Below are positions 7,520-30,865 of a stretch of DNA of 64,000 nt, piece after piece; position 1 is the stretch's first letter; each line of letters begins with the position of its first letter. Position numbers and translations under genes: made by a program. The notes under the pieces were generated by a model that was not told the DNA's origin, did not search any database, and saw nothing but the letters and a program-made list of their open reading frames with translations. This DNA comes from Piromyces finnis finn (taxonomy: Eukaryota > Fungi > Neocallimastigomycota), in contig MCFH01000001.1 of the NCBI GenBank assembly GCA_002104945.1, positions 682,001-746,000 of the forward strand, read 5' to 3'.

Positions 7520-10500
7520 ATGTCTTCAGTACCTCCTCCAACAGGAGGATATCCAAATGGATTTATACCACATCCCCAAAATCCATCATTGGGTCAACGT
7601 CCATATTATCCACCTCAAAATCAAGCAAAATCACAAAGTCTTGATTTACCAGATGATAAATTAAAGGAAAAAAGTATGAAATGGCAACAAATGAATTCAA
7701 AACGTTATGGAGAAAAAAGAAAGTTTGGTTTTGTTGAACAACAAAAGGAAAATATGCCACAAGAACATTTAAGAAAAATTATAAAAGATCATGGTGATAT
7801 GTCAAGTAAAAAATATAGACATGATAAGAGAATTTATTTAGGTGCATTAAAATATATACCACATGCTGTTTTAAAGTTATTAGAAAATATGCCAATGCCA
7901 TGGGAACAAGTAATTAAATTATAATATTTCATATATTTCTATAAAATTTTAATTTAGTTTTATTTTGTATATAAAATTGATTAAATATATAAAAGAAAAT
8001 TATTTGATTGATAGAATTAATTAAATTATTAAATATTTTTATCAAAACTTATTTAAAATAAACCCTTTTATTTAAAAGGTTCGAGAAGTCCCAGTTTTAT
8101 ACCATATTACTGGTGCTATTACATTTGTAAATGAAATTCCTTGGGTTGTTGAACCAATTTATTTAGCTCAATGGGGTACAATGTGGATTATGATGCGTCG
8201 TGAAAAACGTGATCGTAGACATTTTAAAAGAATGAGATTTCCACCTTTTGGTAATTATATTTATTCATTTATAATTTATTTTATTAATAATGTCTTAACA
8301 TTTGAATTTTAACAAATAAAAAAAAAAAAAAAAATTAAATGTATTAATTTAATGTTTTTTTAAATTGAATAAATTATTTCCATTAAACAGATGATGAAGA
8401 ACCACCACTTGATTATGGTGATAATATTTTAGATGTAGAACCATTAGAAGCAATTCAAATGGAATTAGATGAAGAAGAAGATGCTGCAGTATATGATTGG
8501 TTTTATGATCATAAACCTTTAGTAGATACAAAGTTTATATGTGGATCTTCATATAAAAAATGGAATCTTGATTTACCAATTATGTCAACTTTATATAGAC
8601 TTGCACATCAATTATTATCAGATTTCACAGATAAAAATTATTTTTATTTATTTGATCTCAATTCCTTCATTACAGCAAAATCATTAAATCTTGCAATTCC
8701 AGGAGGTCCAAAATTTGAACCATTATATCGTGATATTGATCCAGTAGATGAAGATTGGAATGAATTTAATGATATTAATAAAATTATTATTCGTCAACAA
8801 ATTAGAACAGAATATAAAATTGCATTCCCATTCTTATATAATTCATTACCTCGTTCAGTAAAAGTCTCATGGTATCATTATCCAATATGTGTATATATAA
8901 GAGCTGAAGACCCAGATCTTCCAGCATTTTATTTTGATCCAATTATTAATCCAATTTCATCAAGAACCATTGAAACTCATGTAAAAATATCCCATGAAGA
9001 TGAAGTATTTGGAGATGATGATGAAGATGATGATGATTTTGAATTACCAGAAGATACTAAACCATTCTTAAGTGATACCCCATTATATACTGATAATACT
9101 GCTAGTGGTATTGAATTATACTGGGCTCCAAGACCATTTGATAAACGTAGTGGTCGTTCAAGACGTGCTGTTGATGTTCCATTAGTTAAAAATTGGTATT
9201 TAGAACATTGTCCTTCAGGATATCCAGTTAAAATTAGAGTTTCATATCAAAAATTATTAAAGTATTATATTTTAAATTCATTAAAGCATCGTCCACCAAA
9301 GGCTTTAAACAAAAAATATTTATTTAGACAATTAGCTGCTACTAAGTTCTTCCAAAAGACTGAACTTGATTGGGTTGAAGTTGGTCTTCAAGTTTGTCGT
9401 CAAGGTTATAATATGCTTAATTTATTAATTCATCGTAAGAATTTAAATTATCTCCATCTTGATTATAACTTTAATTTAAAACCAGTCAAAACATTAACAA
9501 CAAAGGAAAGAAAGAAGTCACGTTTTGGTAATGCATTCCATCTTTGTCGTGAAATTCTTCGTTTAACTAAGTTAGTCGTTGATTCACATGTTCAATATCG
9601 TTTAGGTAATGTTGATGCTTTCCAATTAGCTGATGGTTTACAATACATCTTCTCACATGTAGGTCAATTAACTGGTATGTATCGTTATAAATACAAATTA
9701 ATGCGTCAAATTCGTATGTGTAAGGATCTTAAGCATTTAATGTAAGTATTTCTAATTAAAATTTTTAATTACATAGCTAGTAAAAAACTAATAAAAGTTA
9801 TTAATATTTAATTTAATTTATAATTTTAAATTAATTATTTTCATATAATGATTTTTAAATAATAATATAAATTATTTAATACAAATCAATTATCAATAAT
9901 AAATATAAATATGTGTCAAATAAATTAAAAATAGTTACTACCGTTTTAATAGTGGTCCAGTTGGTAAGGGTCCAGGTTGTGGTTTCTGGGCTCCAGGATG
10001 GAGAGTATGGTTATTCTTTATGCGTGGTATTGTACCATTATTAGAAAGATGGTTAGGTAATTTATTAGCTCGTCACTTTGAAGGTCGTCAATCAAAAGGT
10101 ATTGCTAAAACTGTTACTAAACAACGTGTTGAATCTCACTATGATCTTGAATTACGTGCTGCTGTTATGCATGATATTTTAGATATGATGCCAGAAGGTA
10201 TTAAGGCTAATAAATCTAGAACTATTTTACAACATTTAAGTGAAGCATGGCGTTGTTGGAAAGCTAATATTCCATGGAAGGTACCAGGTTTACCAACTCC
10301 AATTGAAAATATGATCTTACGTTATGTTAAGTCAAAGGCTGATTGGTGGACCAGTGTTTCTCACTATAATAGAGAACGTATTCGTAGAGGTGCTACTGTT
10401 GATAAAACCGTTTGTAAAAAGAATTTAGGTAGATTAACTCGTCTTTGGTTAAAGGCTGAACAAGAAAGACAACACAACTATTTAAAGGATGGTCCATACA

Positions 10501-13500
10501 TTACTGCTGAAGAAGCTGTTGCTATTTACACTAGTACTGTTCATTGGTTAGAAAGTAGAAGATTTTCTCCAATTCCATTCCCACCACTCTCTTACAAACA
10601 TGATACCAAATTATTAACATTAGCTTTAGAAAGATTGAAGGAAGCTTATAGTGTAAAGGGAAGATTAAACCAAAGTCAAAGAGAAGAACTTGGTTTAATT
10701 GAACAAGCTTATGATAACCCACACGATTGTCTTTCACGTATTAAAAGATTATTATTAACACAACGTGCTTTCAAGGAAGTTGGTATTGAATTTATGGATT
10801 TATATAGTCATTTGATCCCAGTATATAGTATTGAACCATTAGAAAAAATTACTGATGCTTATTTAGATCAATATTTATGGTATGAAGCAGATAAACGTCA
10901 TCTCTTCCCAGCATGGATTAAACCAAGTGACTCTGAACCACCACCACTTCTTGTTTATAAATGGTGTCAAGGTATCAATAATTTAGTTGATGTATGGGAA
11001 ACTGGAGATGGTGAATGTAATGTAATGTTAGAAACACAACTTAGTAGAGTATACGAAAAGATTGATTTGACATTGTTGAATAGATTATTAAGATTAATTT
11101 TGGATCACAATATTGCTGATTATATGACTGCTAAGAATAACATTGTATTAAATTATAAGGATATGAATCATGTAAATGCCTATGGTCTTATTAGAGGTTT
11201 ACAATTTGCTAGTTTCATTTTCCAATATTATGGTCTTGTATTAGATCTTCTTATTCTTGGTCTTAAGAGAGCTAGTGAAATGGCTGGTCCACCACAACTT
11301 CCAAATGATTTCTTACAATACAAAGATATTAAAACTGAAACTCGTCATCCAATAAGATTATATTCAAGATATATCGATAAAGTACACATTATGTTTAGAT
11401 TTACTGAAGAAGAAGCTCGTGATTTAATTCAAAGATATTTAACTGAACATCCAGATCCAAATAATGAAAATATTGTTGGTTATCCATCTAAGAAATGCTG
11501 GCCACGTGATTGCCGTATGCGTTTAATGAAGCATGATGTTAATTTAGGTAGAGCTGTATTCTGGGATATTAAAAACCGTCTTCCAAGAAGTCTTACCACT
11601 ATTGAATGGGATGAAAGTTTCGTTAGTGTTTACAGTAAAGATAATCCAAATTTATTATTCTCTATGTGTGGTTTTGAAGTTAGAATTTTACCAAAGATTC
11701 GTAGTATTCATGAAGAATTTACATTAAATGAAGGTGTATGGAATTTAATTAATGAACAAACTAAAGAAAGAACAGCTCAAGCTTTCCTTAGAGTTGATGA
11801 TGCTAGTATGCAAGTATTCCATAACAGAATTCGTCAAATTCTTATGGCATCTGGTAGTACCACTTTCACAAAGATTGTTAATAAATGGAATACTGCTTTA
11901 ATTGGATTAATGACTTATTATCGTGAAGCTGCAGTTCATACTCGTGAACTTTTAGATTTACTTGTTAAATGTGAAAATAAGATTCAAACTCGTATTAAGA
12001 TTGGTTTGAACTCTAAGATGCCAAGTAGATTCCCTCCAGTTGTTTTCTATACACCAAAAGAATTGGGTGGTTTAGGTATGTTAAGTATGGGTCATGTATT
12101 AATTCCACAAAGTGATTTAAGATGGAGTAAACAAACAGAAACTGGTATTACTCACTTTAGAAGTGGTATGTCTCATGAAGAAGATCAAGTTATTCCAAAT
12201 CTTTATAGATACATTCAACCATGGGAATCTGAATTTATTGATTCACAACGTGTTTGGGCAGAATATGCATTAAAAAGACAAGAAGCTAATGCACAAAATA
12301 GAAGATTAACCTTAGAAGATCTTGAAGATAGTTGGGATAGAGGTATTCCAAGAATTAATACTCTTTTCCAAAAAGATAGACATACTCTTGCTTATGATAA
12401 GGGATGGCGTGTACGTACAGATTTCAAGCAATATCAAGTTTTGAAGAATAATCCATTCTGGTGGACTCATACTAGACATGATGGTAAATTATGGAATTTA
12501 AATAATTATCGTACTGATATGATTCAAGCTTTAGGTGGTGTTGAAGGTATTTTAGAACATACATTATTTAAGGGAACATACTTCCCAACATGGGAAGGTT
12601 TATTCTGGGAAAAGGCTTCTGGTTTCGAAGAAAGTATGAAATATAAAAAGTTAACTAATGCTCAACGTTCTGGTCTTAATCAAATTCCAAATCGTCGTTT
12701 CACTCTTTGGTGGTCACCAACAATCAATAGAGCTAACGTTTATGTAGGTTTCAGAGTACAATTAGATTTAACTGGTATTTATATGAATGGTAAGATCCCA
12801 ACTTTAAAGATTTCATTAATTCAAATTTTCAGAGCTCACTTGTGGCAAAAGATTCACGAAAGTATAGTTATGGATTTGTGTCAAGTATTTGATCAAGAAT
12901 TAGAAGCTCTTGAAATTGAAACTGTACAAAAGGAAACTATCCATCCACGTAAATCATATAAAATGAATTCTTCATGTGCTGATATTTTATTATTTGCTGC
13001 TTATAAATGGAATGTTAGTAAGCCAAGTTTATTAAACGATACTAAGGATTCATTTGATGGTGCTACTACTCAAAAATTCTGGATTGATGTTCAATTACGT
13101 TGGGGTGACTTTGATTCTCACGATATTGAACGTTATGTTCGTGCTAAATATTTAGAATACACTACTGATAATATGAGTATTTATCCATCTCCAACAGGTA
13201 CTATGATTGGTATTGATTTAGCTTATAATTTACATAGTGCATATGGTAATTGGTTCGCTGGTATGAAGCCATTGATACAACAAGCAATGGCTAAAATTAT
13301 TAAGGCTAACCCTGCTTTGTATGTATTAAGAGAACGTGTTAGAAAAGGTCTTCAACTTTATTCTTCAGAACCAACTGAACCTTATCTTTCATCCAGTAAC
13401 TATCTTGAACTTTTCAGTAATCAAATTATTTGGTTCGTTGATGATACAAATGTATATCGTGTTACAATTCACAAGACTTTCGAAGGTAACTTAACTACTA

Positions 13501-15143
13501 AACCAATTAATGGTGCTATTTTCATTTTCAATCCAAGAACTGGTCAATTATTCCTTAAGATTATTCATACTAGTGTATGGGCAGGTCAAAAGCGTTTAGG
13601 TCAACTTGCCAAATGGAAGACAGCTGAAGAAGTTGCAGCTCTTATTCGTTCTTTACCAGTTGAAGAACAACCAAAACAAATTATTGTTACTCGTAAGGGT
13701 ATGTTAGATCCACTTGAAGTTCACTTACTCGATTTCCCTAACATTGTTATTAAGGGTAGTGAATTACAACTTCCATTCCAAGCTTGCTTAAAGATTGAAA
13801 AGTTTGGTGATTTAATCTTAAAGGCTATTGAACCACAAATGGTACTCTTTAACTTGTATGATGATTGGTTAAAGACTGTTAGTAGTCATACAGCTTTCTC
13901 TCGTTTAATTATGATTCTTCGTTCACTTCATATTAATAATGAAAAGACCAAAATTATTTTAAGACCAGATAAGAATACTGTCACAGAACCACACCACATT
14001 TGGCCAACTCTTACTGATGATGAATGGATTACACTTGAAAATAAACTTAAAGATCTTATTCTTGGTGATTATGGTAAGAAGAATAATGTAAATGTTGCCA
14101 GTTTGACTGCTCCAGAAATTCGTGATATTATTTTAGGTATGGAAATTTCAGCCCCAAGTTTACAAAGACAACAAATTGTTGAAATCGATAAGCAAAACAA
14201 AGAACAAAGTCAACTTACTGCTGTCACCACTAAGACTCAAAATATTCATGGTGATGAAATGATTGTTACTACTACATCTAATTATGAATCACAAACCTTC
14301 TCATCTAAGACTGAATGGAGAGTTCGTGCTATTTCCAGTACTAATTTACATCTTAGAACTAACCACATTTATGTTGATTCTGATGATATTAAAGAAACAG
14401 GTTACACTTATATTTTACCAAAGAATATATTGAAGAAGTTTATTTGCATTAGTGATTTAAGAACTCAAATTGCTGGTTATCTTTATGGTGTCAGTCCACC
14501 AGACAATGCTCAAGTTAAGGAAATTAGATGTATTGTTTTAGTTCCACAATGGGGTACTCATCAACAAGTTCATTTACCATCTCAAATACCTGAACATGAA
14601 TATTTAAGAAACTTGGAGCCATTAGGTTGGATTCATACTCAGCCAGCACTTTTACCACAACTTAGTCCAATTGATGTATCCATTCATTCTAAGATTATGG
14701 CTGAAAACAAATCATGGAATGGTGAAAAGACTGTTATTATTACTTGTAGTTTCACTCCAGGTTCATGTTCATTAACTGCTTATAAGGTTACTCCAGCTGG
14801 TTATGAATGGGGACGTAATAATAAGGATAATACAGCAAACCCAGCTGGATACTTACCATCACACTATGAAAAGGTACAAATGTTATTAAGTGATCGTTTC
14901 CTTGGTTTCTTCATGGTACCAGAACCAGATGGTATTTGGAATTATCACTTTATGGGTGCTAAACATAGAACTGAAATGAAATATACATTACAACTTGATA
15001 CACCAAAGAGCTTCTTTGATGAATGCCATCGTCCAAGTCACTTCTTAAACTTTTCTGGATTAGAAAGTGATGGCTTTACAAATGTTGGATCTGGTGTTGC
15101 TGAAATGAATCAAGAAGTTGATATTGAAGATGAATTTGCTTAA
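7520..15143 (+). CDS. PRP8: U5 snRNP core splicing factor Prp8, 4 exons (7520-7909, 8079-8250, 8391-9741, 9935-15143), ~2373 aa
   Basis: Contains the PRO8NT/PROCN, RT-like, U5/U6-binding, RNaseH-like and Jab1/MPN sequences of Prp8 (e.g. [45 protein letters not shown]). The four exons sum to 7122 nt in frame. Confidence 0.98.
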
Positions 15144-19400: not shown

Positions 19401-22025
19401 AAGTTGATGGTTTTGAAGCAGATTTAGTTGAAGCTGGTAGTTACTTGAAAGATGTTATTATTCCTCAATTTGTTAGTCAATTAGATGATTTACAAATAAT
19501 ACCATTGGATAGTGAAGAATTTACGAATACAATTCATGAAAATGGAATTAATGTTAGATATTTAGGTAATTAAAAAAAAAAAAATTTTTTTTATTTGGCT
19601 TTGGTGTTGGTTTTGGTGTGTGTGGAAAGTTGAATTCTAAATAAATAAAAATATATAATAATTATTAAAAATTATTCATTTTTTTTCTATTTCATATCAT
19701 AATTTTATTTATTTTTTTTTATGGAAAAATAGGTTTAATCGCAAAACTTACAAAATTACCATATATTAGAGATTTCTGTTATTCTGAAATGGTTGCAAGA
19801 ACTTGTAAACACATATTTAATGATAAATTAAGAAAAATAGTTTATCATTTCAAGAGTATTGAAGCTTCAAAAATTGATGAAGAAATTCAAACATTTATAA
19901 TTAATTTATTCCAAACTGTTCTTGGAAATAGTCCAAAAGCTAAAAATGTAAATTATATTATTAATAAATAATTATTTATAGTACTTTATATATATATATA
20001 TATTATATAGAGATGTCCTAATTTCAAGGATAGATAGATGATTTTTATTTTTTTTCTAAAATATTCCTATTAATCAGTTTTTTTTATCCCTTTATATTAA
20101 TAATACATACATATATTCATACATTAGTTCTGGAAAGAAAATATTGAAGATATGGTCAATAAAAAATTTAATAGCAAATTAGATTATCAAGCTTTTCAAA
20201 ATATGCATAAACCAATGCTTTTTATGAGCATGCAATATCATGTATATATTTATATATTTATATTTATATTTTTTAAACTTTATTTTCCTCTAATTTTTAT
20301 AAATCAAATTTCTAATTCTACTTATTTTACTATAATATTCTATATTTATAAAAAAAATGATGATATTGTATAAAATATAAAATGTTTTTTTTTTTCTTTA
20401 AAAAAGTGTGGAGTTATTTTTGAAGATACAACAGATTATGATTTCAAACTTCCTAATCCATTTTCAAAGGAGAATTTTATTGGATTTAGTTCAAAGGTAA
20501 AGACCGTTAATGCTAATTTTGAAGTAGCCGAAAGATTATCCGTAGAAGAAAAGGAAGTCTATGATTTAGGTATTCATTTTTCATCCCTCGGTAGTAAATT
20601 AAAGCTTTCTAAAAATAATAAGACAGCGATGAGATTCCTAGGATTAGCTAAATATTATAATAGTATAGGAAAGTATGAAGAAGCCAAGATTTATGGTAAT
20701 TCCGCTTTAAATTTAGTTCATAAGAATCATGCCTATTACGCATTAATTTTAGAATGTTTAATGGAAACTTGCTTTATGCATTCAGAATTCGTGGATATTG
20801 AAACTACAAATAATAATGAAAATTCCGAAAATACCAATAATTTAGAGAATGGTGAACAAAACCTTCAAGATCCGGAACAAGAACAAACGACTACTACGAT
20901 TGAACATACAAATAAAACCTCTAGAGGATATGCTGTTGATGAAAATGTTTTAGATTTATATAATGAAGCTCTTGATGCCATTAGATTCCATTTAAGTGAA
21001 GATCATATTTATTATATTAATATACATAGTAAATTATCTGAATTATATGTTAAATGTGAAGATTATGAACATGGTTATGAAGTTCATAATGAATGTTTAG
21101 AAGCAGCATATAAATTATTAGGAAAGAATCATCAATTAACTGCAAAACATGTTTCAAAGGTAAAATTTAAAAAAAAAAATTTTTTTATAAAATTATATTC
21201 AATATCATAATATGTATCTATCCATATACTTTATAAGAATCTTTTTTTTTTTTTTTTTAATACTTTTCCCTTTAATTTTATTTAATAAAAAATAATATTA
21301 ATATGCTATATATATTTTTCTTTATTTCATTAAAAAAATATTTTTATTTAAAGGTTGGAAATTATTTACTAACCTTAAAGAGAACAGATGAAGCAATACA
21401 AAAGTATTTAGAAGCTATTCAAATATTTGAAGGCATTGGAACGGATGTAAATATTGAAGTTATATCTATTATTCATCATTCCATTGCTGATGCCTATTTC
21501 CAAAAAGATGATGTTGACAATGCTATTGTTCATAGTATGGAAGCCAGAAAATTAAAAGAAAAATGTTTTGGACAATATCATCCTCAAACCGTAAATACAT
21601 ATCGTCAATTAGCCAAACTTGTATTAGCTAATTATACCAATTATCAAGGAGTTATCACTCCACAAATCAAAAAAAGTATTGAAATTGCTATCAATTGTTA
21701 CGAACGTGTATTTAAATATCTTAAATCCAGAAAAGATTTTGGTAAACAAAATGTAGCCTTATTAACTTTAATTAGAACCTTGATTGGATTAAAATTTAAA
21801 CTTTTCAATACCCGTCAAAGAGAAATTTTAAGAAATGTTCGTCAAAGTGATAAAGTTTATTCTCAAGAATCCGTAAGAGATGTTATATTGAAATTAGTTC
21901 ATTTGACTCCTGTAATAGTTATTGATGAAATATTACAAAAACTAGAAGATAAAGATGAAAGTAGTATTAATGAATTAGGTATTATTGTTCAAATTGCTGA
22001 ATCGGAAGATATTACATTTGCTTAG
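16434..22025 (+). CDS. PH domain + Clu (clustered mitochondria/TIF31-like) + CLU-central + TPR protein, many exons
   Basis: PH: KQGWVYKKGGNHFLSKWRLKWFVL...YYFAGQTKLDREEWIKVL. Clu-like blocks: KWNEKYQ, KKYLYGEIFFQFATD, LVDYKGFRLVACA, RLRPEF, IPLDSEEFTNTIHENGINVRYLG, EMVARTCKHIF. TPR-like helices in ORFs 20629..21210 and 21303..22025. The start codon is uncertain. Confidence 0.72.
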
Positions 22026-22659: not shown

Positions 22660-25600
22660 TCATGGAACAAAATTATGATCTCCATTGGTTGCGCTGGCCC
22701 TCCTGGCCTGTCTTACTGTTTCTTCAGCATTGACGCTCTTGGATGTTGCTTCAAACCTTTTGAACATTGTCCATTGCTGGCCAATAGCAAAAGGCATGAT
22801 TTTGGTTAGAAGTTCCGCGGTTACCGTCAAGAATGGTGTTCCTTCGTTAGTACCAGATTGAATCTGACGCTTACAAAGTTCTTTCCATTTCCTTGAATTG
22901 TAATTAATATTGTTAAAACTTCTTCCCCCAAGAAGGAATTTAAATATTTTACTGCACACACTAGAATAATCATACACATTAATATTCACCGGATTATTAG
23001 AACTATTACTATCATTAACTAAATTACTATCTAAATTAGAATTATTATCTTTACTATTGTTATTATTACTATTGTTATTATTACTGTTACTACTATTGTT
23101 ATTATTACTATTGTTATTATTACTATTGTTACTATTACTATTGTTATTACTACTATTGTTACTATTACTATTAATGTTATTGCTATCTCTACTGATATTA
23201 ACATTTTCATTATTATTGATAGGACTATTGGAATTACGTTGACTGAAAAAATTTAATAGCTGGACTATGGAATCATAATGTTTAATACGGATATCTCTAA
23301 ATGTTGGACAATCTAATAACCAATGTTTAATACTTTGATCTCCACACTTGCAACATGGACAGTAGTTAGGACAAACTGGATCAACAAATTTAGCAGCTTT
23401 GGCAACTCTAGCATCCAACTTGTATCCGCTTCTTGCTTTCAAGAGCCAGTAGAAGCCATAGGCAAACTCTGGGTACTCATAACATAATTTGATAAAATCT
23501 TTAGTTTCAATAAATTTATTATCATCATAATATTGCGCTTTGATTGAATTCCCTTTGAGATCTTTCCAATAAAAGTTTTTAACTGCTTTAACATCTCCAT
23601 GTTTCTTTAATTTTTTATCAAGTGTCCTACTTGATTTGCACTACGTGTATTTTCTAAATTTAGGAATGTAATTGACAAGGTATGAGATAATACAATTTGA
23701 GTTTTTCCATTTGTTAAAACATCTAACCTGAGCTAACGCACATTTGGCTGACAATGGAGGAATATTCAAATCTTTTGAGATAGAGTATAAAGACATAAAC
23801 GATACAGCTTTATGAACTCCGGCAATCCATCGTATTCCTTTGTTAACATGCTTCTGAGCAATCCTAGACCTAGCTTTGTTGGATCCAAGTAATGGTGCAA
23901 AGTATGAAACTCTGCTAATCACTTGTGAGTTAAGTACTAGCTTTTTGAAGGGAATAGGAATATTAGGATTTCTTAAGAATTTACTGACTGAAAAAAGTCC
24001 TTTCAAAACCTTGTTATTAAGAGCTTTAATTACTGGTTTAAGGGACAGATTCTTATCAAATGGAACACCAAGATAAGTATAACAATCAGTAGTTGGAATG
24101 GGTTGTCCTGCTAAGTAAAATGTTGGATCTCTCTTGTTCTGATTTTCTATTGATTCAGGACGAATCACCATCGTTGAACATTTCTGGATACCAAATTCCA
24201 TTTCATTATACAAGGCCCATTCATTAACTCTTCTAAGCATCTTTTTTAAGCATCCTCTTGTTGGAGCACAAATAACTATATCATCTGCAAAAAGTCCACC
24301 ACAGCATCGAGTGTCACCTAAACTGACTCCGAGATCTTCGCACTCTTTAAATATATCATTAATAAAGAGATTAAAGAGAATAGGAGAAAGAGGGCATCCT
24401 TGACGGACTCCTTTCTTCACATCAAAAGATTTCGAGAATTGTCCATCTAATTTGACATTAGCCTTAGATGTTAAATATAAATTTTTGATGAATTGTAAAC
24501 TCTTACCTCGGATTCCTAAACAATCTAATTTATGGAGAATATTACCGATTGGGACTGAATCGTATGCTTTCCTGAGATCTAAAAAGGCCAAATATGTCTC
24601 TTTATTATCTAATTGACGTCTACGGCATATTTCTTGGATTGAGATGAAAAGACTGATACTTTCTTCCTTTTTTCGAAAACCAAATTGTTCAGGTCTAATG
24701 AAATTATTCTTTAAACCATATTCTGAGATTCTAGTGGTGACAATTTTGGAAATCAACTTAATGCCATTATTGATAAGTGATATACCTCGATAGTTATCAC
24801 AATCTGTCAAATCTCCCTTCTTAGGAATAGAAACAATACTGGATTCATTCCATGAGTTGGGGAAGTCTCCATCCCAAATACGGTTGAATAATTTAAGAAT
24901 AAAATTTAAACCATGAGCATCATTATCTGAAGTGGTATTACCAGAAGAATTATTATCTGTAGCATTATTAGAATCATTACTTGATGGAATTAATGCTTTG
25001 TAAAATTCAATTGGAATACCATCCGGACCTGATGCTTTATAATTTGGAGTAGTGAGGATAGCTGACTTGACTTCATCAATACTAATATCTTGGTTGATAT
25101 CCCACTCATCAAGCATAGGAAGTGAAAAACGTTTATTCGTTGGTTCTTCATACCAATGCTCTAAATCAAGACTTACACCACTTGGATCTGATGCAAGCTT
25201 TTCGAAATGATCATGCCACACATCTAGTTGTTCTTCCGTAGCAACAACTAATTCTCCATTTTTATTTTTAATTGGTTGAGCAATAAAGAAAGAATCTTTT
25301 CCAATTTTTGCAGTTTTCTTGATCCATTTCCAGGCCTTCTTAGGATTATGACTCTTCATATACTCACATCCTGTTTTAATCCAATGAAGATATTCTTGTT
25401 TCCTAAATTCATTACATCTTTTGTGGATGTAATCAATGAGCTTACGGTAGATTTTAATTCTTTTAATAAATTCATCTATATCATAAATTCTTTCTTTTTT
25501 AAATCTCTTATACAACTTCATTTTGATTTTTTGAAGATTAAAAATTTGTTGTGAAATATGAAATGAAGACTTTATAACATTATTTGCTGAGGTAATACTG

Positions 25601-27189
25601 AGCTCGTCTGCAATTGAAAAAGCAGTTGAAGTAAACTCTTTGGAAAGTTCATCTGTAGAAACATTAGGATCGTTGAATTTTGCTGAAAGAATTTGGAATT
25701 TATTATGACTAAGAATAGATTCCTTTTCCTCAATACATTTTAATCTATTCCATTTCAGAATTTTCTTAGGAACATTAAAGTCATTAGAAAAATCTTCCAT
25801 AGGAATAATTTTACCATTAATAAGAAGTGGCTTATGGTCTGATACAGGATAAAAATTATTTATAAATGATCCTGAGTGAATAAGATCTTTCATCTTCGAA
25901 TTGATAAGAGCATGGTCAATGTCGGAAGATTGATCACCTCGAGTCCAAGAGATAGTAGACCCTCTAAGCGGAAGAATTTCCCAATCTCCTAATCCATTAG
26001 TTGATAACCAGTTGGATAATTTTACTTTAGACATATTAAAATCACCAACAAGAATCGATGGATGGGATGAATGAGTTTGTAACCACAAGCGAGCTTCTAA
26101 CTTTGCATGATCAACATAGATGTTGTGATGACTATGAGGCATATAAACATTTCCAATCGAGCATTTGAATCTATTCCAGAGACTAAAAGTATAAATAGAA
26201 ATAATATACTTTCCAGAGAAGTTTTCAAGTGAAGCTTGACACGAATTGTGAAAACCTAAATATAAACCTCTCATTCCCGGAACTGATTCGTCAGCTTTCT
26301 TGAAAAAGTGTCTATAGTTTCGCAAAGTAACACGACAAGGATAATCTGTATTCGATCCAGAACCATTACCAGTTTCTTGGAAACATAAAAATAATGGTTT
26401 GAAAATAGCTGTGAAATAGCTAATACTATCTCTCTTTTCGTGATTCCACCCATTGGTGTTCCAACTAAGACAAAAAGAAAAGTTATCAGGCTTGTTGGAT
26501 GAGGAAGAATCGTTGCTATTATTATTATTATTAAAGTCATCGTTATTAATGGATGATGCATCAGAGGAATAAGTAGAACTATTATTAGATGGCTGTGAAA
26601 CTGAAGAACTATCAACTATTGAACTGTTATCAGAGTTGATAGAGCTATTAGAATTAATTGTTGAATGTTGAGATTGAAATTGTGTTTGCTGTAGATCTGG
26701 AATATTTTCATGATGGGAAACTTGTTGAAGATCTTGTTGAAGATCTTGTTGAAGATCGGATTGTTGATGAGATTGTTGAACTGATTGTTGAAATGATTGT
26801 TGAATAGAATGTTGATGTTTATTAGAAACTAAAATTTTACGTTTGAGAGTGGAAAAAGTGTATTTGTGATTCCTTCTACTACGAGCTGAAAAGGAAATTG
26901 AGGTAACTGAAAGTTTCTTCTTTAACATGTGTAAGATTTTAATACAATCTTTCGATGAACCATGAACCTTGACTAAGAAAAAGTGATAATTGAAAGTCTG
27001 AAAATATTTAACACTAATAACTGAATTAAATTTATCTTCTAGAATAACCTCGAGTTTTTCCCATAGCATATTTACTGACCATGATCGAATACCACGGATA
27101 AAGAAGGAGCGAATATCATCTAAGGGGATACCATAAGACCGGGTACCACGTCTGATATAATTCTTATCTTTAATATAAAGGACTGACAT
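22660..27189 (-). pseudogene. LINE polyprotein (N-terminal domain, APE endonuclease, reverse transcriptase, CCHC-like motif), ~1509 codons with one in-frame TAG at 23641-23643
   Basis: APE: CLSWNTNG, CFQET, LVGDFN, SDIDHAL, SDHKP. RT: YRGISL, QFGFR, FLDLRKAYDSV, GVRQGCPLSPILFNLFIND, LFADD, YTYLG. C-terminal CPCCKCGDQSIKHWLLDC. ORFs 23641..27189 and 22660..23442 share a frame, and the 66 codons between them are open. Confidence 0.9.
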
Positions 27190-28332: not shown

Positions 28333-29056
28333 ACGTTCCCAAGAGGGTTTCTTGAAAATATAATTATTTAATTATTTATATTAAATTTTTCAATGGGATT
28401 AAGAAGCCAAGATCTACTTTAACTTGGAGACAAAATTGATTGTGTTTGATCTTGTTGCCATGTTTTATTATTAATCGACGACCACCTTTCAAACATTAAT
28501 AACAGAAATACAATAATAAAAGGAAATTTTTTTTTTAAACATTAATTTTATTAATAATTTTTTTTTTTTTGAATTTTACATATTTTTTATAATTACATTT
28601 TTTTTTTTTTTTAGATAATTAAATTAATTTTTTCATTATAATATTATCAACCTTTAGATAGGTTAAATAATAATATACAAATTTATATTAGCTATTGCAT
28701 TAATTATATGCTAAATTATTTATAAATATATTAACATATAAAAAAAAAAGGTTTTATTTTTCTTTAATAAGATTTTAATATTCATTTTAATGTTCTATTT
28801 AATTCTTTGGGTTTTTTTTTTAATAAAATTTCTATATTGTGTGTATTTTAATTCATTTTTTTTTAATAAAATTTCTATAGTTGTGTGTATTTTATATTCT
28901 ATTAGAATCATAATAATAATTTGATACATCATATATATTTTTTATATATACATAAAATTTTGAAATTCTTCAAACGATAGTTTGAAATATTTACTTTTCT
29001 TTTTTTGTGAAAATTTTGTAGTTGTGTCTAGATTTTTAATTCTACTCAAGATATTT

Positions 29057-30865
29057 TTAACACTTTAAAAGGTCAAATTCATCAACCTTAATATCAGCGT
29101 ATTGTGGATAGTTTTCCATAACATAGTCAACATCCTTATCACCACGACCACTAATATTACATAAAATGATATCATCTGGATATTGCTTAGCTAATTTAAC
29201 AGCTTGAACAAAACCATGAGATGATTCAAGAGCTGGAATAATACCTTCAGCCTTAGAAAGTAAAAAGAAGGCTTCTAAAGCTTCATGATCATTAGCACCA
29301 GATGGAATAGTTCTAGTAATTTCCTTTAAGAAGGCATGTTCTGGACCAACACATGGGTAACAAAGACCACTAGCAATAGAGTGAGATTTGTATTCACCAT
29401 TTTCGTCTTGTAAGACATAAGAGTAAGTACCGTGTAAAGAACCTCTGTGACCGTAAAGTAAACAAGATGCATGATCACCAAACTTAGTACCTCTACCTAA
29501 TGGTTCAACTGGGTACAATTTAATATCCTTGTTATCGAGGAAAGCTGAGAATGTACCTATAGAGTTTGAACCACCACCAAGACAAGCGACGACATGATTT
29601 GGAAGTCTACCGGTTTGATCGAAAAGTTGTTCACGAGCTTCATCACCAATACATCTTTGGAATTCACGAACAAGTAATGGCCATGGATGGACAGCAACAA
29701 CGGAACCAATACATTGGAAGGTTTCTTCTGGATGTTCACCAAAGTATTTTATAGAAGCATCGTTAGCTTCCTTAAGACTCTTGCCACCAAAGTCAACAGG
29801 AATAACTTCAGCACCAAGAACCTTCATTTTAGAAACATTTGGATGTTCCTTAGCAACATCAATGGAACCCATGAATACTTTACAGTCTAAACCAAAGTGA
29901 GCGGCAGCAGTGGCAACAGCTAAACCATGTTGACCAGCACCAGTACCACAACAAAGACAAGTTTTACCTAATTTTTTAGCCATAAGAGCTTCGGCCATAC
30001 AATGGTTAATTTTATGAGCACCAGTGTGATTTAAATCTTCACGTTTAAGGAAAATTCTACCACATTTACCATTATTCTTCTTCTTGATTAATTCTTGAAT
30101 TCTTGTGCATTCGTAAATTGGAGTTGGACGACCTTGGAAGTCTCTACGAATTTTTCTGAGATCATTTCTAAATTCATCAGTTGGAATGTAATTTTTAAGT
30201 AATCCAATAGTTTCAATTAAACAATTAGTAAAGGCGGCTCTATTTGATGCAGTTAATTTTTCTTCCATAATACCACCGAACATTCCGAAATAACCATCGT
30301 TATCTGGATAATTTCCGGTATATTTGTAACTGTACTTATCATCTCTCATTCCCTTCATAATTTTTTCAATCTTTTCAAGTTCTTCACCTTTAATTTCACC
30401 CTTTGGTGGAGAAATTCCAAGTTTCATCATTTCCATGAGCATTTCTGGAGTCATAAATGGTGGGATAATATCAGCTGATGGAGCAGCAGAATTGGCGGTT
30501 GGAGCTTGTTGTTGTTCTTTTGGAGCTTCCTTTGGAGCTTCTTTTGGAGCTTCGGAACCTTGATTACCGACATTTTTCTTTAACATTTCAATAATTTCTG
30601 GTGGTGGACCGTTTGGATATTTTTCCTTAAGATGTGGTGGTGGACCATTTGGGAACATTTTCTTAATAAATTCTGGGATTTCTGGTGGAGCTTGTTGTTT
30701 TTCATTTGGAGCTTCCTTTGGAGCTTCGGAACCTTGATTACCGACACTTTTCTTTAACATTTCAATAATTTCTGGTGGTGGACCGTTTGGATATTTTTCC
30801 TTAAGATGTGGTGGTGGACCATTTGGGAACATTTTCTTAATAAATTCTGGAACTTGATCTTCCAT
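29057..30865 (-). CDS. trpB: Stand-alone tryptophan synthase beta-like PLP enzyme (TrpB1 type) with ~180-aa repetitive N-terminal extension; catalytic Glu replaced by Gly
   Basis: Intronless 602 aa. Motifs: GRPTP, LKREDLNHTGAHKIN (PLP lysine), GTGAGQHG, ACLGGGSN, GIIPALESSH, NISGRGDKD. No TrpA TIM barrel is present. Confidence 0.9.
   Translation of the reverse strand: MEDQVPEFIKKMFPNGPPPHLKEKYPNGPPPEIIEMLKKSVGNQGSEAPKEAPNEKQQAPPEIPEFIKKMFPNGPPPHLKEKYPNGPPPEIIEMLKKNVGNQGSEAPKEAPKEAPKEQQQAPTANSAAPSADIIPPFMTPEMLMEMMKLGISPPKGEIKGEELEKIEKIMKGMRDDKYSYKYTGNYPDNDGYFGMFGGIMEEKLTASNRAAFTNCLIETIGLLKNYIPTDEFRNDLRKIRRDFQGRPTPIYECTRIQELIKKKNNGKCGRIFLKREDLNHTGAHKINHCMAEALMAKKLGKTCLCCGTGAGQHGLAVATAAAHFGLDCKVFMGSIDVAKEHPNVSKMKVLGAEVIPVDFGGKSLKEANDASIKYFGEHPEETFQCIGSVVAVHPWPLLVREFQRCIGDEAREQLFDQTGRLPNHVVACLGGGSNSIGTFSAFLDNKDIKLYPVEPLGRGTKFGDHASCLLYGHRGSLHGTYSYVLQDENGEYKSHSIASGLCYPCVGPEHAFLKEITRTIPSGANDHEALEAFFLLSKAEGIIPALESSHGFVQAVKLAKQYPDDIILCNISGRGDKDVDYVMENYPQYADIKVDEFDLLKC
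30531..30850 (-). repeat. Intragenic direct repeat, two ~146-nt copies with a 174-nt (58-aa) period
   Basis: 30531-30676 and 30705-30850 are near-identical. Both encode PEFIKKMFPNGPPPHLKEKYPNGPPPEIIEMLKKxVGNQGSEAPKEAP. Confidence 0.95.

Follow-up and report, generated by a model that had tools for sequence, protein, structure and literature searches.

In the tryptophan synthase beta subunit (TrpB), Glu109 (Salmonella numbering) is essential for the activation of indole, and a salt bridge between Asp305 and Arg141 stabilizes the closed state, in which the aminoacrylate is shielded from solvent (PMC9512447). A natural departure at these sites has been described in plants (Florean et al. 2025, Nat Chem Biol, PMC12727527). 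The plant TSB-like protein, a paralogue of TrpB, has Ala (Ser or Pro in Solanaceae) at the equivalent of Glu109 and universally Glu at that of Asp305; it makes no tryptophan, binds and activates TrpA with release of free indole, and forms no tyrosine when given phenol. A laboratory counterpart is the group of engineered tyrosine synthases TmTyrS1/4/6 (PDB entries 8egy and 8eh1), which carry Gly at the catalytic Glu position. Here we describe a TrpB-like gene of the anaerobic fungus Piromyces finnis (Neocallimastigomycota) in which Gly occupies the Glu109 position and Cys the Asp305 position. The gene lies in a 64,000-nucleotide stretch of contig MCFH01000001.1 (assembly GCA_002104945.1, positions 682,001 to 746,000), which was analyzed as a whole and is referred to below as the window.

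The gene family and its horizontal transfer are already known. "Tryptophan synthase (TrpB)" is listed among the horizontally acquired genes of anaerobic fungi (10.1101/487215), and a study of tortoise fungi names Verrucomicrobia as the donor of a TrpB transfer (PMC10978972); a transferred tryptophanase accompanies TrpB in these reports. In the literature that we searched, we found no account of the fungal family having lost Glu109 and Asp305. The conserved Gly, Cys at position 305, the changes at Tyr186, Gly193, Pro194, and residue 170, the long stem in the tree, and the N-terminal repeat module described below seem to be undescribed.

Glycine and cysteine at two catalytic positions of a TrpB1-type protein

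The coding sequence (Table 1) is the only long open reading frame (ORF) of its region. Its product matched PF00291 of Pfam (2.6e-32, 112.8 bits) and the NCBIfam trpB model TIGR00263 (417.9 bits, just over the cut-off of 392.45), and it scored far under the cut-offs of the TrpB2-type models TIGR01415 (138.6 versus 518.85 bits) and NF009057 (134.4 versus 366), which represent further relatives of TrpB, some of them without TrpA and with altered substrates. HMMER alignments with solved TrpB structures gave E values of about 4e-112 to 1e-111. An AlphaFold model, built from a 31-sequence alignment and confident in the beta domain (mean predicted local distance difference test [pLDDT] value of 77.6 overall), was superposed on TrpB of Pyrococcus furiosus (PfTrpB) with a TM score of 0.94, a root mean square deviation of 1.9 A, and 46% identity. 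The fold (type II) and the profile scores are both those of TrpB1 proteins and clearly point to TrpB1 rather than TrpB2 descent.

The original prediction, made from the letters of the window, had placed Gly at the Glu109 position of an unbroken ORF, and both statements hold. The alignment with solved TrpB structures has no gaps across K-T-C-L-C-C-G-T-G-A-G-Q-H-G and sets Gly307 opposite Glu104 of PfTrpB (counted on the PfTrpB alignment), which corresponds to Glu109 of Salmonella, the residue that activates the N1-H of indole. The codon reads "acc" on the plus strand, i.e., GGT on the minus strand, and is two base changes away from GAA or GAG, from which the prediction had argued that a sequencing error was unlikely. 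Contigs assembled from one DNA run and from three RNA-type runs, each of a different study, span positions 28696 to 30777, are interrupted only within the repeated N-terminal part, and are identical at this codon, which rules out a sequencing or assembly error there. Word depth was 70 to 240 across the gene and about 0 to 40 in the flanking sequence; the gene is transcribed in the three studies.

We obtained the DNA of seven orthologues, giving, together with the window gene, eight genes from several genera. Seven of the eight encode Gly at the position and one encodes Ser, so the residue is not private to this assembly. For comparison, we used 112 near outgroups and the 149 nearest 50%-identity cluster representatives out of 1.84 billion proteins. 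Among the 139 representatives that align at the Glu109 position, 127 have Glu and none has Gly; Gly at this position is not due to chance. The prediction had called Glu109 near-universal, which agrees with these counts, and the plant TSB-like protein was already on record as a natural exception (PMC12727527).

The machinery for binding pyridoxal 5'-phosphate (PLP) has been kept. The Schiff-base lysine Lys87, the GGGSN phosphate loop, Ser377, Glu350, and the Thr110-His115 loop are invariant in the eight fungal orthologues, and His86 and the aromatic Phe306/Tyr position are likewise unaltered in the fungal clade. All of the motifs that had been noted as intact were located in the protein (HTGAHK, residues 280 to 285; GTGAGQHG, 307 to 314; GGGSN, 430 to 434; PALESSH, 544 to 550; SGRGDKD, 572 to 578).

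The substitution of Glu109 does not stand alone. The Asp305 position holds Asp in all 112 near outgroups and in 99 of 121 cluster representatives; here the salt-bridge residue is replaced by Cys502, and its partner, residue 141, is Lys both in this protein and in the bacterial outgroups. Cys502, Asn368, Gln384, Ala391, and Trp395 are each present in 8/8 orthologues. At positions 193, 194, and 197, the fungal clade has Ala, Val or Ile (Asn in one orthologue), and Trp, respectively; Arg148 is replaced by Lys; and a longer, variable loop takes the place of the universal G-G-x-[FY]-[IVL]-P segment that otherwise lies close to the N terminus of the beta domain. Residues 170, 186, and 282, which we take to line the tunnel or the nucleophile site of TrpS structures, have all changed to polar residues (Asn, Gln, and Thr, respectively). 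The residues that sandwich indole, His115 and Phe306, are retained as His313 and Tyr503. Taken together, Gly at 109, Cys at 305, and the polar changes at 170, 186, and 282 suggest a wider remodeling and not a Glu-to-Gly switch on an otherwise normal TrpB. The original prediction was right about the Gly but had overlooked the accompanying changes.

These differences can be set against the canonical TrpB1 proteins (TIGR00263) of the "N-H-C-M" stand-alone subfamily (Lentisphaerae, Verrucomicrobia, Epsilonproteobacteria, and Clostridia), to which the fungal protein is 53 to 58% identical. The two share the fold, the PLP lysine, the Thr110-His115 loop, GGGSN, Glu350, Ser377, and the Phe306/Tyr position, whereas the fungal protein differs by Glu109 to Gly, Asp305 to Cys, residue 170 to Asn, Tyr186 to Gln, Gly193-Pro194 to Ala-Val, residue 197 to Trp, and residue 282 to Thr; it also lacks the G-G-x-[FY]-[IVL]-P segment, carries a 180-residue N-terminal extension, and sits on a very long stem.

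The N-terminal extension contains two repeats in this protein and one to three in the orthologues. The repeat units and their linkers are 92% identical at the DNA level. Each repeat is modeled as three short helices (pLDDT of about 70) and the linkers, which are rich in Pro, Ala, Glu, and Lys, as disordered; two further helices are modeled at residues 140 to 148 and 160 to 175 (pLDDT of 71 to 91). Among proteins of 331 to 1053 residues, a search with the N-terminal module found it in none outside the TrpB-like family, and the ESM Atlas returned only proline-rich matches at the level of noise. Our guess is that the extension is a tether or docking module, probably one that links the enzyme to a scaffold or partner.

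The Gly in the window species is directly preceded by a Cys-rich stretch, C-L-C-C-G (29948-29959, minus strand). Within it, Cys303 is kept in 7/8 orthologues, and residues 305 (Cys/Val) and 306 (Cys/Ala) of the protein are variable. This region and the invariant Cys502 place several thiols close to the active site.

Table 1. Positions of the TrpB-like gene, its changed and retained sites, and a neighboring gene in the window
Feature	Position	Strand	Basis
Complete intronless coding sequence, 602 aa + stop; TrpB-like PLP enzyme with N-terminal extension	29057..30865	-	ORF list, PF00291, TIGR00263, RNA-type contigs
TrpB1-type beta domain, aa 181-602	29060..30325	-	Structure matches, AlphaFold model
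Gly307 codon GGT; Glu109 (Salmonella) / Glu104 (P. furiosus) position	29945..29947	-	Gapless alignment; GGT in 7/8 orthologues, AGT (Ser) in L005
Cys502 codon TGT; Asp305 (Salmonella) / Asp300 (P. furiosus) position, closed-state salt-bridge residue	29360..29362	-	PfTrpB alignment; TGT in 8/8 orthologues
Lys285 codon; PLP Schiff-base lysine (Lys87 equivalent), retained	30011..30013	-	HTGAHK motif; invariant across orthologues
Asn368 at residue-170 position (Salmonella Cys; most TrpBs Val/Ile/Thr)	29762..29764	-	Invariant Asn in fungal clade; Asn in 1/145 representatives
Gln384 at Tyr186 position	29714..29716	-	Gln (CAA) in 8/8 fungal orthologues; Tyr in 131/144 representatives
A-V-H-P-W replacing near-universal G-P-H-P-[YF] loop, positions 193-197	29681..29695	-	Gly193 and Pro194 each in 138/147 representatives
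Thr480 at residue-282 position (Phe in nearest bacterial subfamily)	29426..29428	-	Outgroup and orthologue comparison
First N-terminal repeat, aa 6-39; motif of 34 aa that contains two P-N-G-P-P-P turns	30749..30850	-	Repeat comparison, AlphaFold model
N-terminal repeat 2, aa 64-97	30575..30676	-	Repeat comparison, AlphaFold model
Conserved helical segment, aa 134-173, between disordered linker and beta domain	30347..30466	-	Alignment shows conservation between genera
PRP8 gene, two large exon ORFs; convergent neighbor, context only	8459..15143	+	Pfam PRP8 domains

Selection, origin, and genomic setting

The proteins nearest to the window protein are those of Piromyces sp. E2 (86% identity) and Neocallimastix (83%); five further clusters, drawn from rumen and fungal transcriptome or metagenome data, come next. 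Beyond the fungal family, the best matches fall to 52 to 58% identity and comprise Basidiobolus and bacterial stand-alone TrpBs (Lentisphaerae, Christensenellaceae, and others). The fungal genes group as a single clade (support of 100) in a maximum-likelihood tree, on a stem of at least 0.93 substitutions per site, and the crown branches measure 0.05 to 0.2. The ratio of nonsynonymous to synonymous substitution rates (dN/dS), calculated by the Nei-Gojobori method over 375 shared codons of the eight genes, was 0.11 to 0.26 for all 28 pairs, and all eight ORFs are intact. The original prediction had proposed examining Gly across orthologues for purifying selection, and the family shows such selection. 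The long stem and short crown branches reflect a burst of change followed by constraint, which is the pattern expected after a change of function. The Basidiobolus TrpB, which also reached a gut fungus from bacteria, sits on short branches in the same tree.

Several observations identify the gene as a resident of the fungal genome. The GC content across the window is 13 to 33%; PRP8 and the TrpB-like gene are likewise convergent in two Neocallimastix assemblies, a conserved synteny; and one orthologue contains a GT-AG intron. These findings rule out bacterial contamination. The intron, which is the only one in its gene, was found in a metagenomic orthologue with three N-terminal repeats, where it is 301 nucleotides long, has a GC content of 10%, and lies early in the beta domain (L009:1728-2028); the Neocallimastix, Piromyces, and window copies are intronless. 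Between PRP8 and the TrpB-like gene, the window contains an ORF of a retroelement of the long interspersed nuclear element type (endonuclease and reverse transcriptase, 1182 residues, 23641-27189, minus strand), which accounts for most of the extra PRP8 spacing relative to Neocallimastix. A tetratricopeptide-repeat ORF is located at 21303-22025 on the plus strand.

Some of the related sequences have features of their own. The public Piromyces sp. E2 protein model (P0001, 428 residues) is truncated; the real ORF encodes 675 residues (L001:2260-4287, plus strand) and has three N-terminal repeats at its start. The most divergent orthologue, L005 (protein P0007), has Ser at position 109, Ala for Gly111, Asn at 194, Gln at 280, and Ile for His in G-P-E-H-A, and its dN/dS is 0.20 to 0.24; it shares its JGI sample with L006 and may be a second paralogue or derive from another species. 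The stand-alone TrpBs of Basidiobolus (P0009 and P0010) keep Glu109 and Asp305 and are 83 to 84% identical to TrpBs of Opitutae/Puniceicoccales (P0121-P0175), e.g., Ereboglobus luteus, an identity that indicates a recent, separate transfer from Verrucomicrobia.

A possible bacterial source was sought by scanning one genome for each of 185,579 prokaryotic species with the pattern [Gly/Ala]-T-G-A-G-Q-H-G-V-A. Five of the 12 sequences that it matched are genuine TrpBs: those of Luteolibacter (Ala, stand-alone), a Verrucomicrobiota metagenome-assembled genome (MAG; Gly), two Planctomycetia MAGs (Ala), and a Streptococcus mitis isolate (Gly). All five keep Asp305 and the canonical pocket, and the Verrucomicrobiota gene lies within an ordinary trpD-C-F-B-A operon. 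None of the five combines Gly109 with Cys305 as a donor would, and hence no operon context bearing on function was obtained; the fungal combination would thus have arisen after the transfer or in an unsampled donor. The five genes (L139:4844-6151, plus strand; L142:3054-4265, minus strand; L133; L136; and L135:2488-3738, plus strand) could be errors, auxotrophs, or genuine variants.

We also looked for an ordinary TRP5 or a further TrpB of these fungi. A metagenome scan for E-T-G-A-G-Q-H-G in AT-rich fungal codons showed no anaerobic-fungus gene among the at least 120 matches listed, which included low-GC bacteria and yeast-like TRP5 fusions (L026, L038, L073, and L132), and a protein search that started from the Basidiobolus TrpB yielded only TrpBs of bacteria, Verrucomicrobia-like ones among them. 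Two candidates for fungal transcripts, P0069 and P0037, proved to be bacterial, one having a GC content of 61% and the other an operon context. In pairwise alignments, several TrpB-like 50%-identity clusters (P0286, P0299, P0323, P0330, P0342, P0344, P0345, P0348, P0360, and P0373) have Ala, His, Leu, Gln, Tyr, or Cys in place of the PLP Schiff-base lysine, often with Asp or Pro at 109 and a residue other than Asp at 305, and are candidate TrpB-derived pseudoenzymes. In P0008, a canonical 561-residue TrpB encoded on an ENA contig, ~150 residues that include the PLP-lysine and Glu109 region are duplicated exactly and in tandem within the protein, which is probably an assembly artifact.

Possible functions of the fungal protein

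We lean toward the view that the protein is a repurposed stand-alone PLP enzyme, which would still reach the aminoacrylate but no longer couple it efficiently to indole. On this account, a bacterial stand-alone TrpB was acquired horizontally and later repurposed as a family specific to Neocallimastigomycota. The enzyme would bind PLP and L-serine, or else a comparable beta-substituted amino acid, and form the aminoacrylate by means of the kept Lys, Thr110-His115 loop, GGGSN, Glu350, and Ser377. The indole-activating carboxylate has been lost with Glu109, and so has the Asp of the 305-141 salt bridge, the stabilizer of the closed, solvent-excluding state. The nucleophile site would be made more polar by Asn at 170, Gln at 186, and Thr at 282. 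The aminoacrylate may be captured by a non-indole, probably more polar, nucleophile or be let go as pyruvate and ammonia. The one to three small helical repeats, on their flexible Pro/Ala/Glu/Lys linkers, and the helical segment may serve as a family-specific tether to a partner or scaffold. With the PLP machinery intact, it is reasonable to infer that the aminoacrylate still forms and that indole is no longer coupled in the normal way, and the protein is probably not a normal tryptophan synthase. In this respect, the original prediction, which had the aminoacrylate kept and another nucleophile accepted, is compatible with our interpretation; we found no support for its narrower proposal of phenol or tyrosine.

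Several points weigh against this interpretation. The fungal neighbors in the window are uninformative and offer no candidate cosubstrate. With His313 and Tyr503 kept, an indole-sized aromatic ligand may still fit; the protein also tops the NCBI trpB equivalog cut-off. The roles of residues 170, 186, and 282 at the tunnel or nucleophile site of TrpS structures are presumed ones. The conservation of the PLP site fits a true enzyme and a TSB-like activator alike and cannot separate them, because an aminoacrylate at the beta site sets off alpha-site activation. Engineered E105G variants retain some indole turnover (PMC13174591).

More tentatively, the protein might be a natural TrpB-derived synthase of a non-tryptophan amino acid, in which the serine-derived aminoacrylate meets a non-indole nucleophile of the rumen (e.g., a phenol, a thiol or sulfide, or an N-heterocycle). 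If so, evolution would have repeated the Glu-to-Gly move by which directed evolution opened TrpB to new nucleophiles.

Two other roles seem unlikely to us. One is that of a TSB-like pseudoenzyme, which would have no product of its own and would bind TrpA (the TRP5 alpha domain or a separate protein) and activate it allosterically, so that free indole escapes. TrpA in fungi is usually fused to its own TrpB, so that there is no obvious free partner, whereas the chloroplast has free TSA; no TrpA or TRP5 of these fungi was retrieved by the codon scan, among the matches listed, or by the Basidiobolus-seeded search. The likeness to the plant protein is nevertheless close: both are natural, lineage-conserved TrpB paralogues that are TrpB-like in fold and substituted at exactly the Glu109 and Asp305 equivalents, with a small, nonacidic residue at the former (Gly or Ser here; Ala, Ser, or Pro in plants) (PMC12727527). 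However, the plant Asp-to-Glu change has been proposed to act as a permanent salt-bridge lock (PMC12727527), of which the fungal Cys is incapable. The G-G-x-[FY]-[IVL]-P segment has given way to a variable loop in the fungal clade, and the plant protein is described without an N-terminal repeat module. It arose, moreover, by duplication of plant TSB, whereas the nearest relatives of the fungal proteins are bacterial TrpBs and the Basidiobolus TrpB; the tree thus indicates that the fungal family is a product of bacterial transfer and reached the two changed sites independently. The other role is that of a tryptophan synthase beta subunit that salvages rumen indole with serine, more slowly and less selectively than usual but adequately. 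The TIGR00263 score, the annotation of the Neocallimastix protein as "tryptophan synthase," and the kept His115 and Phe306/Tyr equivalents agree with it, as do the listing of TrpB beside a transferred tryptophanase (10.1101/487215; PMC10978972) and the residual indole activity of engineered E105G enzymes (PMC13174591). Against it stand the essential role of Glu109 in activating indole (PMC9512447) and the plant TSB variant E190A, in which the Glu-to-Ala change abolished tryptophan synthesis (PMC12727527). Asp305 and the near-universal Tyr186, Gly193, and Pro194 were, furthermore, lost along with Glu109, and the long stem, which indicates a changed constraint, is absent from the equally transferred Basidiobolus TrpB.

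A natural tyrosine synthase, which would couple phenol or cresol para-selectively to the serine-derived aminoacrylate and which the original prediction had put forward, appears improbable. Phenolics are plentiful in the rumen, the retained His313 and Tyr503 make a pocket of aromatic size plausible, and TmTyrS1 is a close structural match, as are all other TrpBs. Gly307 is, in addition, among the residues (Gly, Ala, or Ser) that are reported to open bacterial TrpBs to phenols when introduced at E105 (as cited in PMC12727527). The engineered enzymes share the fold and PLP chemistry of the fungal protein and its Gly, but they are laboratory products of a pre-evolved stand-alone parent that needed further COMM-domain mutations (I128V, N167D, I174T, F184A, and L147Q) and, going by the cited mutation lists, kept Asp300 (PMC13174591). 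Compared list by list, the set of changes in the fungal clade (109, 170, 186, 193-197, 282, and 305) looks different from the TmTyrS set, and its extra polar residues and Asp305-to-Cys change would lie outside the published solution. Neither the sequence nor its context gives a hint of phenol in particular, and the failure of the plant TSB-like protein, a natural Glu-to-Ala variant, to form tyrosine from phenol is indirect evidence against this reaction (PMC12727527). Least probable of all is that the gene is an artifact or a transferred TrpB drifting toward a pseudogene. Two catalytic residues are gone, and the divergent orthologue L005 has further changes and a dN/dS in the upper part of the range. 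The dN/dS values of 0.11 to 0.26, however, contradict a pseudogene, the eight ORFs are intact, the replacement residues are themselves mostly invariant, and the gene is transcribed in three studies with the same codon in RNA-type and DNA contigs.

Noncanonical amino acids are made on a leading platform, TrpB, and removal of the catalytic Glu has been the key laboratory step toward new nucleophiles. A natural family without Glu109 and the Asp305 latch, maintained in several genera under purifying selection, would show what evolution makes of the same move. A repurposed enzyme of this kind may carry out a new biosynthetic reaction or act as a deaminase, or a TSB-like regulatory pseudoenzyme may have arisen here for a second time, independently. 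The finding also bears on annotation. The protein exceeds the cut-off for the trpB equivalog, public fungal genomes label it "tryptophan synthase," and transfer studies have counted it as such; metabolic models of anaerobic fungi may consequently credit these organisms with an indole-salvage step that is absent.

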